Below, in pieces: positions 20,903 to 40,601 of a stretch of 64,000 nucleotides of DNA. Below the pieces are notes generated by a model that saw only the letters and a list, made by a program, of their open reading frames with translations, was not told the origin of the DNA and made no database searches. Origin of the DNA: Macrostomum lignano (taxonomy: Eukaryota); assembly GCA_002269645.1 (NCBI GenBank), contig NIVC01002620.1, forward strand, positions 1 to 64,000, in the 5' to 3' direction. Within the stretch, counting starts at the first letter, position 1; each line of letters begins with the position of its first letter. A program made the position numbers and the translations under genes.

Positions 20903-23900
20903 CTATATACAATTAATAGTCACGGTAGCCAACCAGATCAAAGGCGCCGCCATCAACGCTGGCATAATAAATAATTGTCTACCAGCAGACGCGGGAGAGA
21001 CGCCTGTGATGTACTTTTCCACTTGCTCACTATTCGACTTTAAGGTCGGACTTTGCCGCGAATTGGATGTCCCCTGTGGTGCACTCGCGGCCGCAGTAGT
21101 GAAATGCACCACTGCCGGGGGACTGTCGCCGAATGCGGAGAGCGTCTGGACGCTGGCTATGTACACCGTGTCAGATTGAAGGTTGAATAGCAGGAAGCGT
21201 CGCACACCAAAGCCAACAATACTGGTGAGTGCTCGAGAGTTGCTCATCTGGATAAAAAGTTGATATTATAATTATTAGTAAATAATTTGGTAAGAAATTA
21301 GTCACAAAACAGTACTTCGACCAGAAATCATTGATACATAGTGCCTTGTCTAGACCTAAGGAAACATTCTGCAAGTAACAGGAACAGTAGAATTTCGGGC
21401 CTGAAGTTTACCGCAACTGAGGATCATGAGGTTACCGCAACGAAGAATCAGAAGGTTACCGCAAAGAAGAATCAGAAGGTTACCGCAACTGAGGATCAGA
21501 AGGTTACCGCAACTGAGGATCAGAAGGTTACCGCAACTGAGGATCAGAAGGTTACCGCAACTGAGGATCAGAAGGTTACCGCAACTGAGGATCAGAAGGT
21601 TACCGCAACTGAGGATCAGAAGGTTACCGCAACTGAGGATCAGAAGGTTACCGCAACTGATCAGAAGGTTACCGCAACTGATCAGAAGGTTACCGCAACT
21701 GAGAATCAGGTTACCGCAACTGAGAATCAGAAGGTTACCGCAACTGAGGATCAGAAGGTTACCGCAACTGATCAGAAGGTTACCGCAACTGATCAGAAGG
21801 TTACCGCAACTGATCAGAAGGTTACCGCAACTGATCAGAAGGTTACCGCAACTGATCAGAAGGTTACCGCAACTGAGAATCAGAAGGTTATTGCAAAGAA
21901 GAGTCAGAAGTTTTTCTGCAACGGAGAATTAGAAGGTTACCACAACAAAGAATCGGGTTACAGCAGCGAAGAATCAGAAGGTTACCACAACTGAGGATCA
22001 GAAGGTTACCGCAACTGATCAGAAGGTTACCGCAACGAAGAATCAGGTTATTACAATGAAAAATCAGAATGCTATTGCAATGAATAATCATTTTCAAACT
22101 TTCTCACTCGCGGCATGAGGCCGCCGGGAGTGTACACAAGCGGGTGCACTTCCTCTGGCTCGCGAGGCCCCCAACGGACTCGAAAGTTGCGAATCACTCT
22201 CAAAGGTGGATAGCTGGGCGCTGACCAATCCAGACGAGCGATGGTGCCTTCGACCAAGACGCTGAGTCCGACCGGTGGCTGTGGCGTTTGAGCAACTTCT
22301 GAAATTTTATTAATAATAACTGCCAATCGGTAATCTGACGGATTAGAAGAAAACAAATATTCTCGAAGCAACGAAGCAATGAAAGACGCGCACCAGACAC
22401 GGGGCAAGGCGGCAGTTTGTCGCCTTTGATTTGGGTCTCCTTGCAACTGCCGGTACAGAAACAGCTGTTCCAGGTAAATGCGACTCTGTCTGTGCTGGTC
22501 AGGCCGCTAAACTGTAGCGTGTAGTGACAACTAAAGTGCAGGCCGCTGATGATCAGCATGAGAGTATTCTGCAAAATTGGGCGAGGCTGTGATCCTGCAG
22601 GCGGACATTTTGCAAAGCAAATATTCAAGACATGAAGACACGACATGAAGGCACTACGAAACCGAGACACTTAGCAACAAAATACAAAAGACATAAGTCA
22701 CTGTCCCAAAGCACCTGGAAATCAAGACATCAGGGCGCCAAAAACCTATAAATCAAGGCATCAGGCACTAAAACACCTGGAAATCAAGACATCAGGGCGC
22801 CAAAACACCTGGAAATGAAGCATCTAAGAACTAATAAAACACCTATAAATCAAGACATCAGGGCGCCAAAAACCTATAAATCAAGACATCAGGGCACCAA
22901 AACACCTGGAAATCAAGACATCAGGGCGCCAAAAACCTATAAATCAAGACATCAGGGCACCAAAACACCTGGAAATCAAGACATCAGGGCGCCAAAACAC
23001 CTGGAAATCAAGACATCAAAGAACTAAAACACCTATAAATCAAGACATCAGGGCACCAAAACAACTGGAAATCAAGACATCAGGGCGCCAAAACACCTGG
23101 AAATCAAGACATCAGGGCACCAAAACACCTGGAAATCAAGACATCAGGGCACCAAGAGACCTATAAATCAAGAAATCACGGCCTCTGGAGGACATTAGAA
23201 AGGCAAAGGGGCTCACATCAACAATAGTCTGCCTCGTCTCATTCTGAATGGTCTCAGCTTCTATGCAGACGCGCTGACTCCATCGCACCGAGTACTTGTT
23301 AACGATGTCGCGTGAATTCGAACTGTCAGTTTCTAAAATTAATTCCGTCAATCAGAGTGGCACGAATTCAAATTGATTTCTTTTTCAATAGTTTTAGCTA
23401 TCACGTGATTTAATATAAAACAATAAACTCACCGAATACTGAGCTAGGCCATAATAGAAACATTTTTAACTGACCATTCTCATAATACGGCTGCTTAGTA
23501 ACAAGTTCTGAAGTCGGCGTTTTGCTGCACGAGCAATTATCAAAATCTGTTTCAACTGATCTATCGCTGTCTTCGTTCAAAGTCAGTTGCGGTCGTTGTG
23601 CTGGCGCAGTCGTTTCCGGGTTGTGCCTGTTTCCTGGAAATTCAACGTTCAAAATAATTTTTTTGCTTACGCTACTTCATGTAGCTACTAATAAGAGTAG
23701 AGACACGATACGTTAAACGCTAAACATTTATTTCTTGAAAGAAAACCGACTTTACGACGTGTTTTGCTTACTATTCCGATAGAGCGATTTTGGCACCTGC
23801 ATTGTGACAATCCTGATTGCTCGGTTGAATTTCACAAACAGCGGCCTCCTGTCGCCCGGACGCGCATGGATCATCAAGGCAGTCAGCTGAAATGCCAAAC

Positions 23901-38900: not shown

Positions 38901-40601
38901 TGCTAGTGTCAGATTATGGTGCTAGTGTCAGATTCTGGTGCTTGTGTCAGACTCTGGTGCTAGTGTCAGATTATGGTGCTTGTGTCAGATTTTGGTGCTA
39001 GTGTCAGATTCTGGTGCTTGTGTCAGATTCTGGTGCTAGTGTCAGATTCTGGTGCTTGTGTCAGATTCTGGTGCTTGTGTCAGATTCTGGTGCTAGTGTC
39101 AGATTATGGTGCTAGTGTCAGATTCTGGCGCTAGTGTCAGACTAAGCAATGTCAGGGATTGGCTAAAAACGTTTTAGTATAGTGGATTTTATTCAGCAAT
39201 CAGATTACCTATATAGTCCAAAGTCACAAGTTCATCTTTTTTGTGTCTGTCAGTTACTTCTGACACGACAAAGGGACTTGTAAAACAGTACGCCTACCAC
39301 ACATAAATCAAAGAGCGGCTATCATAAGCCAGACCAGGAGGACAAAACTAACAAATTTGTAAAAACAGAAATTTTGCTTGCCCGGATTATCTTGGCTCGT
39401 ATAAAAATATTTTTATTCACTCAAATTTGCATTCCGACACGTTCTCATTGTTTGATTTGCTCTTTGAGTCTCTCTGTGGTGTCTGAGCCATTTTTCATTA
39501 ATAGACTCGAGTAAGTACTAGTCACAAGAACTGCAGCATTCGGTGGAATTCCAGATTTTCTTGTTTACTCAGCTACTGGTTAAACACTGAACCAGCTGGC
39601 AGAGGGTAACAACTCCAAAAGATTTTGTAACACTTTGAAAATAGTCCCTGATACGACTCCTGCATAACTCTCCCTGATTCTCATGTGTCACTCTCCCCAA
39701 TACTCCTGCATCACTCTCCCTGATTCTCATGTGTCACTCTCCCCAATACTCCTGCATCACTCTCCCTGATTCTCATGTGTCACTCTCTCCGATACTTATG
39801 TCACTCTCCCCGATACCCATGTGTCACTCTGCCCGATACTCGTGTGTCACTCTCCACGATACTCATGTGTCACTCTCTCCGGTGCTCATGTGTCACTCTC
39901 CCCGATACTCATGTGTCACTCTCTCCGGTACTCATGTGTCACTCCCCCCGATACTCATGTGTCAATCTCCCTGATACTCATGTGTCACTCTCCCTGATAC
40001 TCGTGTGTCACTCTCCCCAATACTCATGTGTCACTCTCTCCGATACTCATGTGTCACTCCCTCCGGTGCTCATGTGTCAATCTCCCCAATACTCATGTGT
40101 CACTCCCTCCGGTGCTCATGTGTCACTCTCCCCGATACTCATGTGTCACTCTCCCGATACTCATGTGTCACTCTCCCGATACTCATGTGTCACTCTCTCC
40201 GGTGCTCATGTGTCACTCTCCCTGATACTCGTGTGTCACTCTCTCCGATACTCATGTGTCACTCTCTCCGATACTCATGTTTCACTCTCCACGATACTCA
40301 TGTGGCACTCTCTCCGGAGTTTCACTCTCTCTGAGGGCGTTGGCACTTATGAGGCACAATTAATAATGTGCCCCTGTTAATCTCACAGTTTCGGTAAAAC
40401 TATAGCCTAGACAGCAGGGCTACTCACCTTAGACTTGAACGTCTTCAAGCATTTAGCTGTACAGACCGTTCTTGCCTCGCTGTCACTCAGTGGAACAGTC
40501 TGAGACGCTGCAGTCGCACAGTCTGACTTTAAAAGCAAAAAAGTCAACAAAACTGGTAGCAGCACCGATAAAGCTGTAAAAGTCTGTCCGTCTGTAAGCA
40601 T
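20903..40601 (-). CDS. ANOS1: Anosmin-1/KAL1-like protein: signal peptide, Cys box, 4 FN3 domains, hydrophobic C-terminus; 12 exons, 741 aa
   Basis: Exons 40601-40428, 36452-36390, 30212-30041, 29193-28652, 25675-25601, 25294-25238, 23886-23772, 23633-23433, 23332-23217, 22568-22394, 22298-22108 and 21247-20903 total 2226 nt, all GT-AG and phase-compatible with no internal stop. Anosmin-type motifs: [24 protein letters not shown]...[16 protein letters not shown]...[58 protein letters not shown]. Confidence 0.88.
21405..22060. repeat. 24/21-bp minisatellite (AAGGTTACCGCAACTGAGGATCAG) in the last intron of the anosmin-like gene
   Basis: Direct reading; source of the spurious 'VTATEDQK' ORF. 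Confidence 0.96.
22705..23170. repeat. 32-bp minisatellite (AAAACACCTGGAAATCAAGACATCAGGGCGCC)
   Basis: Direct reading; intronic. Confidence 0.95.
23993..24473. repeat. (GTCT)n microsatellite
   Basis: Direct reading. Confidence 0.98.
25365..25560. repeat. 34-bp minisatellite (TATGATCTACCCACTAATCTACTGTCTAATCGGG), 5-6 copies
   Basis: 34-bp spacing checked at 25367/25401; fills the intron between two small exons. Confidence 0.93.
26293..28526. repeat. 2.2-kb (GTCT)n microsatellite with GT variants
   Basis: Direct reading. Confidence 0.98.
29190..29960. repeat. ~41-44-bp minisatellite (GAGTCTGAGGATCTGATGAAGGAATCGAGGGATGTTGGACA) with a 247-bp higher-order duplication
   Basis: Direct reading; the variant TCTTAAGG recurs at 29431 and 29678. 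Confidence 0.95.
30467..32200. repeat. 1.7-kb (GATA)n microsatellite
   Basis: Direct reading. Confidence 0.98.
33003..35428. repeat. 2.4-kb 12-bp satellite ((C/T)AGTGTCTGTCT)n
   Basis: Direct reading; a shorter related block lies at 36030-36345. Confidence 0.97.
36030..36345. repeat. 12-bp satellite grading into (GTCT)n
   Basis: Direct reading. Confidence 0.93.
36995..39142. repeat. 19-bp minisatellite (TAGTGTCAGATTCTGGTGC) with a 667-bp higher-order repeat
   Basis: Rare variants recur 667 bp apart (37821/38488; 37900/38567). Confidence 0.96.
39655..40330. repeat. ~23-bp minisatellite (GATACTCATGTGTCACTCTCCCC-like)
   Basis: Direct reading; in intron 1 of the anosmin-like gene. Confidence 0.93.

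Follow-up and report, generated by a model that had tools for sequence, protein, structure and literature searches.

Anosmin-1 is the Kallmann-syndrome protein, and debate continues over what its WAP domain does. A C-terminal GPI site is predicted for Caenorhabditis elegans KAL-1, invertebrate anosmins are without the His-rich region, and point mutants in the WAP domain have context-dependent effects in worms and flies (PMC3580776). The anosmins of the planarian Schmidtea mediterranea are also predicted to carry a GPI anchor and were GPI-positive in the authors' pipeline, with one of the three in the planarian matrisome table receiving only a "weak" GPI call (PMC6453901). Planarians possess four anosmin paralogues, anos1a-d (PMC12932670). 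Of these, Anos1a is described as consisting of a WAP domain and three FN domains, together with a GPI anchor (PMC12080947, PMC12932670), and recent work ties it to RoboA signalling in the fate of stem cells (PMC12932670).

The public annotation of Macrostomum lignano was built from StringTie/TACO RNA-seq assemblies in which de novo transcripts required at least 95% mapping coverage; alternative transcripts were then filtered so that one CDS per gene was kept in GenBank (PMC5730564). A recent genome duplication is known in the species (PMC5730564). Here we describe a gene of this flatworm that encodes an anosmin-1 homologue in which the WAP domain is missing.

Structure of the gene

The region is gene Mlig019415.g1 of M. 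lignano, a homologue of anosmin-1 (KAL-1/ANOS1), and lies on the minus strand of the window (the whole 64-kb stretch of DNA that was analysed). Its 12 GT-AG exons give a CDS from 40601 to 20903 and a protein of 760 aa that matches residues 22-781 of PAA56441.1 (GenBank; BOX15_Mlig019415g1) at 100% identity. That entry is titled "hypothetical protein", so the gene had already been deposited without a name; the RNA-seq basis of its model is as published (PMC5730564). The initial annotation had proposed 12 exons spliced into one frame of 741 aa. The exon count and the single frame stand, but splicing yields 760 aa. The features are as follows, all on the minus strand, with splice and cleavage junctions marked by a slash.

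Exon 1, 40428..40601, minus: aa 1-58; start ATG at 40601; Cys-box pair C47-x3-C51; donor AAG/gtgagt
Predicted signal peptide, 40601-40509, minus: about aa 1-31, in exon 1
Exon 2, 36390..36509, minus: aa 59-98; Cys-box C78 and C96; ccag/GTAACT...CAGACT/gtaagt
Exon 3, 30041..30212, minus: aa 99-155 plus 1 nt; ends ...SGEATIG; ttccag/TGCACC...TTGGAG/gtatga
Intron 3, 29194..30040, minus: 847 bp, where WAP would be encoded; mostly 41-bp minisatellite
Exon 4, 28652..29193, minus: aa 156-336; FN3-1 and start of FN3-2; catcag/ATTCCC...TATGAG/gtaagg
FN3-1, 29164-28841, minus: about aa 166-273, in exon 4
Exon 5, 25601..25675, minus: aa 337-361; part of FN3-2
Exon 6, 25238..25294, minus: aa 362-380; part of FN3-2; best Pfam fn3 stretch
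Exon 7, 23772..23886, minus: aa 381-418; end of FN3-2; tttcag/CTGACT...GGAATA/gtaagc
Exon 8, 23433..23633, minus: aa 419-485; linker and start of FN3-3
Exon 9, 23217..23332, minus: aa 486-524; part of FN3-3
Exon 10, 22394..22568, minus: aa 525-582; end of FN3-3; anosmin-specific cysteines (FSCHY; C566; C579)
Exon 11, 22108..22298, minus: aa 583-646; part of FN3-4
Exon 12, 20903..21247, minus: aa 647-760 and stop; end of FN3-4, Ser/Thr-rich linker, GPI-signal-like tail; atccag/ATGAGC
GPI-signal-like tail, 21004-20906, minus: aa 728-760; hydrophobic run aa 738-760 (20974-20906)

An in-frame stop lies 34 codons upstream of the ATG in exon 1, with no further ATG between the two, and the product of this exon is identical to PAA56441.1. 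Exon 2 is found in all three public copies of the gene (g1, g2 and g3). The two junctions that had called for confirmation, 30041/29193 and 22108/21247, are canonical GT..AG and agree with the RNA-seq-based public model. An exon candidate at 24830-24770 was dropped, as public transcripts use 23772-23886 instead. Downstream of the stop codon, an ATTAAA is present at 20580.

The gene exists in about three near-identical copies, which are about 99% identical and probably reflect the known recent genome duplication. Between g1 and g2 there are 12 synonymous and 11 nonsynonymous differences (pN/pS 0.29, binomial p 0.003), and introns diverge by 1.3% versus a pN of 0.64%. By these comparisons the gene looks functional, with purifying selection acting between its copies. 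The annotated g2 protein is shortened by a 1-bp deletion in its exon 11. The deletion falls within a G homopolymer, and the assembly is PacBio-based, so it may be an error of sequencing. Given the match to an RNA-seq-based annotation, the homology to anosmin-1 and the purifying selection between copies, the observation is far beyond chance.

Relationship to anosmin-1

The resemblance to anosmin-1 seen in the initial annotation is borne out. The best PDB match (phmmer) is anosmin-1 itself (1ZLG_A, E 7e-10), and a comparison by hhalign with 19 vertebrate anosmins scores 98.6% (E 5.6e-16) over 571 collinear columns that correspond to human residues 37-652. A precomputed match to Pfam PF28407 (Ig_ANOS1) exists for the near-identical g2 copy. 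Four FN3-type regions align with anosmin-1 in collinear order (Pfam fn3 E 6.7e-13, and 4.9e-5 for exons 11 and 12). Within these, exon 4 aligns with FN3-1 of human anosmin (EPLVFLVQ / W..LA.TT / Y.FRV.AV), exon 8 provides the best phmmer stretch against human residues 400-482, and the FN3-3 cysteines C529, C559, C587 and C600 (g2-copy numbering) are invariant with the 19 vertebrate anosmins. On this sequence evidence the protein is an anosmin-1 homologue. Heparan-sulfate binding and the modulation of FGFR or Robo signalling are traits of the family; this protein has only two basic clusters of the BBXB type, RKLR at 291 and RRYR at 328. The C-terminus consists of a Ser/Thr-rich linker followed by the hydrophobic tail and is without the basic His-rich C-terminus of vertebrate members, which is not disqualifying because invertebrate members are without this region (PMC3580776). 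The AlphaFold model (pLDDT 50.7) is too poor for use.

The results for an N-terminal Cys box are mixed. Pfam Cys_box (PF17869) has no match even at E<=10 (orangutan anosmin as control, 2e-42), and HMMs derived from the vertebrate Cys box or WAP domain reach only 0-5 bits on the N-terminus. A spacing expression for ten cysteines (C3C..C..C2C3C..C3C..C3C), which was written post hoc, matches aa 47-141 as well as 18 of the 19 vertebrate anosmins, and none of 200000 shuffles. The cysteines not already accounted for in exons 1 and 2 are all encoded by exon 3 (C99, C103, C119, C123, C137 and C141). C47, C78, C99, C103, C137 and C141 are invariant in an alignment with three planarian anosmins and one human anosmin. 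When only vertebrate sequences are used, the last three cysteines fall on C1-C3 of the WAP domain in phmmer, hhalign and MAFFT alike; this ambiguity was resolved only once planarian sequences were added to the alignment. A 10-cysteine Cys box thus appears to be present by spacing, though Pfam Cys_box does not detect it.

Loss of the WAP domain

Aligned with planarian and human anosmins, the protein has a single clean gap of about 50 columns in place of WAP, exactly at the exon 3/4 junction (...EATIG/DSP...). The junction codon G/AT is split in phase 1 between residues G155 and D156 and the reading frame is kept, in agreement with the earlier proposal that the Cys box joins directly to FN3-1. 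The residual GDSP aligns with the GDCP/GKCP at which WAP starts in other anosmins. Pfam WAP has no match at E<=10 in the 760-aa protein (2e-10 in the orangutan control), a WAP cysteine expression that matches 19 of 19 vertebrate anosmins has no match here, and the WAP signal is absent from all six frames of the 64-kb window. Together these searches uphold the statement that there is no WAP domain.

Intron 3 had been described as almost entirely minisatellite, and TRF indeed reports 18.7 copies of a 41-bp period at 29192-29967. The three frames of the intron contain no WAP match and no Cys-rich reading frame. The minisatellite repeats the acceptor motif TCATCAG/AT, which yields 25 acceptor-like copies, 5 being both open and in frame, and the intron is 847 bp long here versus 765 bp in the g2 copy. 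The EATIG/DSP junction is common to g1, g2 and g3 of the Mlig_3_7 assembly and to UniRef A0A1I8HJI6, and occurs in a second protein of the older annotation, where it is read in another frame. The same junction is therefore used in two M. lignano assemblies and in several gene copies.

Termini of the protein

Proteins destined for a GPI anchor are made as precursors that carry an N-terminal signal peptide and finish in a hydrophobic stretch of 15-25 aa at the C-terminus. The signal for attachment consists of small residues at the omega and omega+2 positions, a short polar spacer and then the hydrophobic tail. The M. lignano protein has only two hydrophobic segments, aa 5-29 and aa 737-760. The first (mean Kyte-Doolittle 2.69) is followed by ATA/A, as expected of a signal peptide under a rule-based check. 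The second contains a run of 23 aa (mean Kyte-Doolittle 1.94) that ends the protein, preceded by small residues 5-10 positions upstream in the context ...TG(728)VS(730)PA(732)S(733)AGRQ/LFIM.... Read by eye and by rule, the candidate omega sites are G728 (omega+2 = S), A732 (omega+2 = A) and S733 (omega+2 = G). The tail of small residues, short spacer and hydrophobic run noted in the initial annotation, with its end at 20903, is thus as described; it fits the classic GPI-signal layout, and a GPI anchor is a probable prediction. The tail-coding sequence is identical in g2 and differences start 17 nt past the stop, an agreement that carries almost no information because the copies are about 99% identical. 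Novelty of the membrane tether itself is not supported: predicted GPI anchors have been published for C. elegans KAL-1 (PMC3580776) and planarian anosmins (PMC6453901, PMC12080947, PMC12932670). The WAP loss is the only new element.

Proposed function and alternative explanations

We consider it probable that the gene encodes a WAP-less, GPI-type anosmin-1 homologue with a role at the cell surface. The precursor would comprise, in order, a signal peptide, the 10-Cys box, four FN3-type domains, a Ser/Thr-rich stalk and a GPI-attachment-type signal, with the WAP domain, whose usual place is after the Cys box and ahead of FN3-1, taken out whole at the phase-1 junction. It would enter the secretory pathway, exchange its C-terminal ~30 residues for a GPI anchor and remain attached to the outside of the cell that makes it, serving at short range as an adhesion or co-receptor molecule that binds heparan sulfate. 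Its FN3 domains may mediate this activity, following what is described for C. elegans KAL-1 and planarian Anos1a, without whatever modulation WAP provides. GPI attachment, ligand binding and biological role are what we infer, and a co-receptor or decoy role is speculative.

The absence of WAP could be an artefact if a real WAP exon had collapsed or been lost in the assembly of the intron 3 minisatellite, or had been filtered out as an alternative exon, the major protein then being a canonical Cys box-WAP-FN3 anosmin. Assemblers collapse such 41-bp repeats, the length of the intron differs between copies, the array supplies many alternative acceptors, and the retention of one CDS per gene (PMC5730564) could hide an isoform. 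Nevertheless, the junction recurs in three Mlig_3_7 loci and in two proteins of an independent older annotation, the frame is continuous across it, no WAP-like reading frame exists on either strand of the 64 kb and de novo transcripts had to reach the 95% mapping coverage (PMC5730564), all of which makes a hidden exon very improbable. It is somewhat less improbable, though still unlikely, that the C-terminal run is a plain transmembrane anchor without a cytoplasmic tail, or is non-functional and leaves the protein secreted like vertebrate anosmin-1. The "weak" call for one planarian anosmin (PMC6453901) is in line with this, and a GTGAGC at 21030, within the last exon, could in principle serve as a donor that would skip the tail. 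The hydrophobic segment, however, ends the protein without basic stop-transfer residues, and small residues (G, S and A) stand upstream of it at the spacing a GPI signal requires; the worm and planarian homologues are predicted to be GPI-anchored, and the public transcript model runs through the terminal exon to its stop codon.

The gene might instead be a redundant paralogue that arose by recent amplification and is drifting into non-function, while a separate WAP-containing anosmin does the canonical job in M. lignano; the missing domain would then be functionally meaningless. At least three nearly identical copies exist, one is truncated, and the four planarian paralogues make more divergent M. 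lignano paralogues plausible. Against such drift, pN/pS is low, nonsynonymous divergence is half of intron divergence and the cysteines of the Cys box and FN3-3 are all intact; the g2 deletion may be an error, and genome duplication would explain the copies. We judge drift about as unlikely as the absence of a GPI signal, and prefer a functional, WAP-less, GPI-type anosmin.

The chances are evenly balanced that purifying selection maintains, in a basal flatworm, an anosmin with a cleanly excised WAP domain and an intact Cys box, four FN3 domains and GPI signal. If so, nature would have supplied a "delta-WAP" allele in a model capable of transgenesis, a membrane-tethered core of Cys box and FN3 domains would work without WAP, and add-back could test what WAP does, a point disputed between protease inhibition and modulation of FGFR or heparan sulfate. 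A selectively maintained anosmin of this kind would support the FN3 and Cys-box core as the basic function and WAP as a dispensable regulator. Transgenesis and RNAi are available in M. lignano, so the variant is open to direct study. Its significance is limited by the GPI tether not being new, by the prior deposition of the gene and by domain loss in one lineage-specific paralogue group being a common evolutionary event: the gene is real and ordinary, a domain-loss variant of modest interest within a known family.

Comparison with other anosmins

Vertebrate anosmin-1 (ANOS1/KAL1; PDB 1ZLG) is collinear with the M. lignano protein across the whole stretch from Cys box through FN3-4, and the FN3-3 cysteine signature and the Ig_ANOS1 Pfam match are common to both. 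It differs in having a WAP domain (Pfam 2e-10), a Cys box recognised by Pfam (2e-42) and a basic His-rich tail, and in being secreted and not GPI-linked; identity is about 23-25%. C. elegans KAL-1 is another invertebrate anosmin that has no His-rich tail and whose C-terminus is predicted to hold a GPI site, but by review description it has WAP and three FN3 domains (PMC3580776). The anosmins of S. mediterranea (anos1a-d; kal1 dd_6746, dd_10075 and dd_13188) are flatworm proteins too, with a signal peptide, Cys box, FN3 domains and predicted GPI anchor. In the three available N-termini, a WAP-like cysteine module follows the Cys box in all three, whereas M. lignano has none; the module of dd_10075 is degenerate and was missed by InterPro (PMC6453901). 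Identity between the planarian and M. lignano anosmins is only about 22%. Their Cys-box cysteines match up column by column, as do the G and P that flank the WAP start.

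Gene model and public record

The window is eukaryotic sequence in which micro- and minisatellites are very abundant. The initial model on the minus strand, assembled by hand, had 13 exons and encoded 790 aa. A protein search with this model returned a single cluster, that of M. lignano BOX15_Mlig019415g2 (P0002), whose members include g1 (P0003 = PAA56441.1), g3 (P0004), and UniRef A0A1I8HJI6 (P0005). The model was dropped since two of its exons are contradicted by public transcripts: 36778-36635, taken as exon 2, is skipped in these transcripts and its Cys-box score was not significant, and 24830-24770 is replaced in them by 23886-23772. 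The corrected model has 12 exons and a product of 760 aa.

Exons of the corrected anosmin gene model (every intron GT..AG)
40601-40428, minus, exon 1
36509-36390, minus, exon 2
30212-30041, minus, exon 3
29193-28652, minus, exon 4
25675-25601, minus, exon 5
25294-25238, minus, exon 6
23886-23772, minus, exon 7
23633-23433, minus, exon 8
23332-23217, minus, exon 9
22568-22394, minus, exon 10
22298-22108, minus, exon 11
21247-20903, minus, exon 12

The product matches residues 22-781 of PAA56441.1 at 100% identity. In this "partial" entry residues 1-21 are an in-frame 5' leader; in the genome, the ATG at 40601 is preceded, 34 codons upstream, by a stop in the same frame. The coordinates, exon count, two junctions (30041/29193 and 22108/21247), and both peptide ends of the initial annotation were recovered, while its length of 741 aa is corrected to 760 aa. 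The junctions have transcript support because the GenBank annotation of the assembly was built from genome-guided RNA-seq assemblies (StringTie/TACO) and a de novo transcriptome (PMC5730564). The gene is real, expressed, and already in GenBank, though unnamed.

The earliest database match was P0001, an M. lignano "Testis expressed 36" entry from an older annotation, which has exact peptides in common with the Cys-box and FN3-1 exons and, between them, other frames of the window. It derives from an older assembly, in which the same M. lignano locus was modeled with a shifted frame, and is still informative because it spans the same 30041/29193 junction. The possibility that the two exons form one repeat element (transposon or SINE) was ruled out, as no second copy of their sequence occurs elsewhere within the window and no tRNA or Rfam match was found. 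A whole-library HMMER search with exon 4 yielded no orthologues; the matches outside M. lignano were weak and repeat-driven, among them P0006, a 52-aa tandem-repeat, RT-like protein.

Across 20000-41500, almost every intron of the anosmin gene is dominated by its own satellite. These include 2.2 kb of (TCTG)n, 1.7 kb of (ATAG)n, 2.4 kb of a 12-mer, and 2.1 kb of a 19-mer, together with further arrays of 23-, 24-, 32-, and 34-mers. Tandem repeats make up about half of the 19.7-kb gene. In the intron 3 minisatellite (29194-30040, minus) the acceptor motif TCATCAG/AT is repeated 25 times, and upstream acceptors at 29775, 29610, 29520, 29487, and 29406 are in frame and open. If used, these could extend the segment between the Cys box and FN3-1 by 71-194 aa of repeat rich in Ser, Pro, and Asp. 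Gene copies vary in the length of the array (847 bp against 765 bp). Within intron 1, 36635-36778 (minus) is a 48-codon phase 0-0 ORF with AG/GT borders and a C-x2-C-x6-C motif; it would preserve the frame if included, is missing from all public transcripts, and is conserved in the g2 copy to the same degree as the flanking intron.

Neighboring genes

Other coding features of the window
4438-5772, minus, ORF with two Neuralized homology repeats (Pfam Neuralized, E 2.5e-54)
13542-14570, minus, rhodopsin-family GPCR, single 343-aa ORF (Pfam 7tm_1, E 1.4e-36)
43403-45935, plus, two long ORFs of 144 aa and 442 aa (no Pfam match)
56888-57370, 62163-62582, and 63212-63610, minus, flotillin gene exons (Pfam Flot 1.2e-6; Band_7 8.9e-14)

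The GPCR ORF sits downstream of the anosmin gene, and the flotillin exons occupy the end of the window with the highest coordinates. The two ORFs at 43403-45935 are positionally equivalent to a 648-aa gene upstream of the g2 copy (4320-7019 of its locus, L001). Next to the Neuralized ORF, a stretch of 62% GC at 1-4000 (region also noted as 1-4100) holds more NHR-like ORF fragments along with tandem repeats rich in proline and serine.

Membership in the anosmin family

Identity to vertebrate anosmins is approximately 23-25%. The top sequence match among solved structures is human anosmin-1 (1ZLG_A, E 7e-10), and hhalign against A1, a profile built from 19 vertebrate anosmins, gave a probability of 98.6% (E 5.6e-16) over 571 collinear columns, spanning human residues 37-652, from the Cys box through the end of FN3-4. 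The precomputed Pfam family PF28407 (Ig_ANOS1) is assigned to P0002 as it is to every vertebrate anosmin listed, and four cysteines in the third FN3 region are invariant between the M. lignano protein and vertebrates. By these sequence comparisons the protein is an anosmin homologue, in agreement with the family assignment made initially. AlphaFold2 run on P0002 with vertebrate sequences gave a mean pLDDT of 50.7, with values below 50 at the N-terminus.

The predicted architecture comprises a Cys box, then four domains of FN3 type and a probable GPI anchor, with no WAP. The protein is classed as a WAP-less anosmin variant and not as a canonical member because WAP, a defining anosmin-1 domain, was tested for and is absent. 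The best 120 matches listed in a human ANOS1 search are all vertebrate and all have WAP, a listing that says nothing on invertebrate forms.

The Cys box and loss of WAP

Pfam recovered both domains in the control, orangutan anosmin (P0015; Cys_box 2e-42, WAP 2e-10), and fn3 alone in the M. lignano protein at E<=10. HMMs derived from vertebrate sequences of the Cys box or of WAP scored just 0-5 bits on the M. lignano N-terminus. The N-terminal cysteines are spaced C47-x3-C51 ... C78-x17-C96-x2-C99-x3-C103 ... C119-x3-C123-x13-C137-x3-C141, and human anosmin has the same order of short spacings (C3C, C5C2C3C, C3C, C3C). A 10-Cys spacing regex, written post hoc from both sequences, matched the M. 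lignano protein and 18/19 vertebrates and none of 200,000 shuffles of the N-terminus.

When compared with vertebrates alone, phmmer, hhalign, and MAFFT put the last three N-terminal cysteines on WAP C1-C3, which would make this 20-residue segment a half-WAP relic. That placement scores approximately 3 bits, not above the Cys-box placement, and implies unpaired cysteines and a WAP without any disulfide partners. It is lost once planarian anosmins join the alignment. In a five-way alignment (A5) of the M. lignano protein, human anosmin, and three planarian anosmin N-termini from the supplement of PMC6453901, C47, C78, C99, C103, C137, and C141 are invariant and the Cys box ends in C-x3-C-x13-G in all five sequences. 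The ambiguity is resolved at the alignment level by the planarian sequences, which place the three cysteines in the Cys box.

In the same alignment, G155-D-S-P of the M. lignano protein matches G-D/K/N/V-C-P, the start of WAP, and one gap of approximately 50 columns spans the whole WAP module. The gap falls on the exon 3/4 junction, where the codon G/AT is split (phase 1). No WAP-like reading frame was found in the 64-kb window by regex or by a six-frame WAP-HMM scan, and Pfam detected no WAP in three-frame translations of intron 2, taken over its unique parts, or of the entire intron 3, which is an 847-bp intron of 41-bp minisatellite. The single gap and the lack of a WAP-like frame in the window mean that the WAP-less state, which is seen in three loci and two assemblies, is real for the genome and the public transcript models. 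Thus, the absence of WAP and the minisatellite make-up of the intron, both noted initially, were upheld.

C-terminus

Just two segments of the protein are hydrophobic, aa 5-29 and aa 737-760. The protein ends with a 23-residue hydrophobic tail preceded by an 11-residue stretch; candidate omega sites before the tail are G728, A732, and S733, each with a small omega+2 residue, and a Ser/Thr-rich linker lies upstream. Small omega and omega+2 residues followed by a terminal hydrophobic run are the textbook layout of a GPI signal. A GPI anchor is probable on these sequence features, which accord with the GPI-signal-like C-terminus proposed at the outset. The tail-coding sequence is identical in g1 and g2, with substitutions beginning 17 nt past the stop, but copies that are approximately 99% identical throughout make this weak evidence.

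Gene copies and selection

All 12 exons are present at the g2 locus with 98-100% identity. The g1 and g2 coding sequences differ by 12 synonymous and 11 nonsynonymous changes (pS 0.022, pN 0.0064, ratio 0.29, binomial p 0.003), and their unique intron and UTR sequence diverges by 1.3%, a pattern that indicates purifying selection at the sequence level. In the g2 copy (PAA93018.1), a GGGGG run of exon 11 is shortened by a 1-bp deletion (L001 29662-29851; window 22172) that shifts the frame and accounts for the truncation and odd C-terminus of the protein. Either an error in the assembly or a mutation that inactivates g2 would explain the deletion.

Comparison with known anosmins

The literature searched makes no mention of a Macrostomum anosmin, and the clean loss of WAP is the sole feature for which we could not find an earlier description. 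The membrane tether proposed initially is not new since a GPI site is predicted in C. elegans KAL-1 (PMC3580776), the planarian matrisome includes "GPI-anchored anosmin proteins" (PMC6453901), and planarian Anos1a is described as consisting of WAP, three FN, and GPI and as partnering RoboA (PMC12080947, PMC12932670). Invertebrate anosmins also have no His-rich tail (PMC3580776). By analogy with these relatives, the M. lignano protein could function at the cell surface, either as a short-range cue or as a co-receptor. In planarian dd_10075 the WAP is degenerate and uncalled by InterPro (PMC6453901), whereas the M. lignano protein is without WAP; there is thus some precedent for WAP erosion in flatworms.
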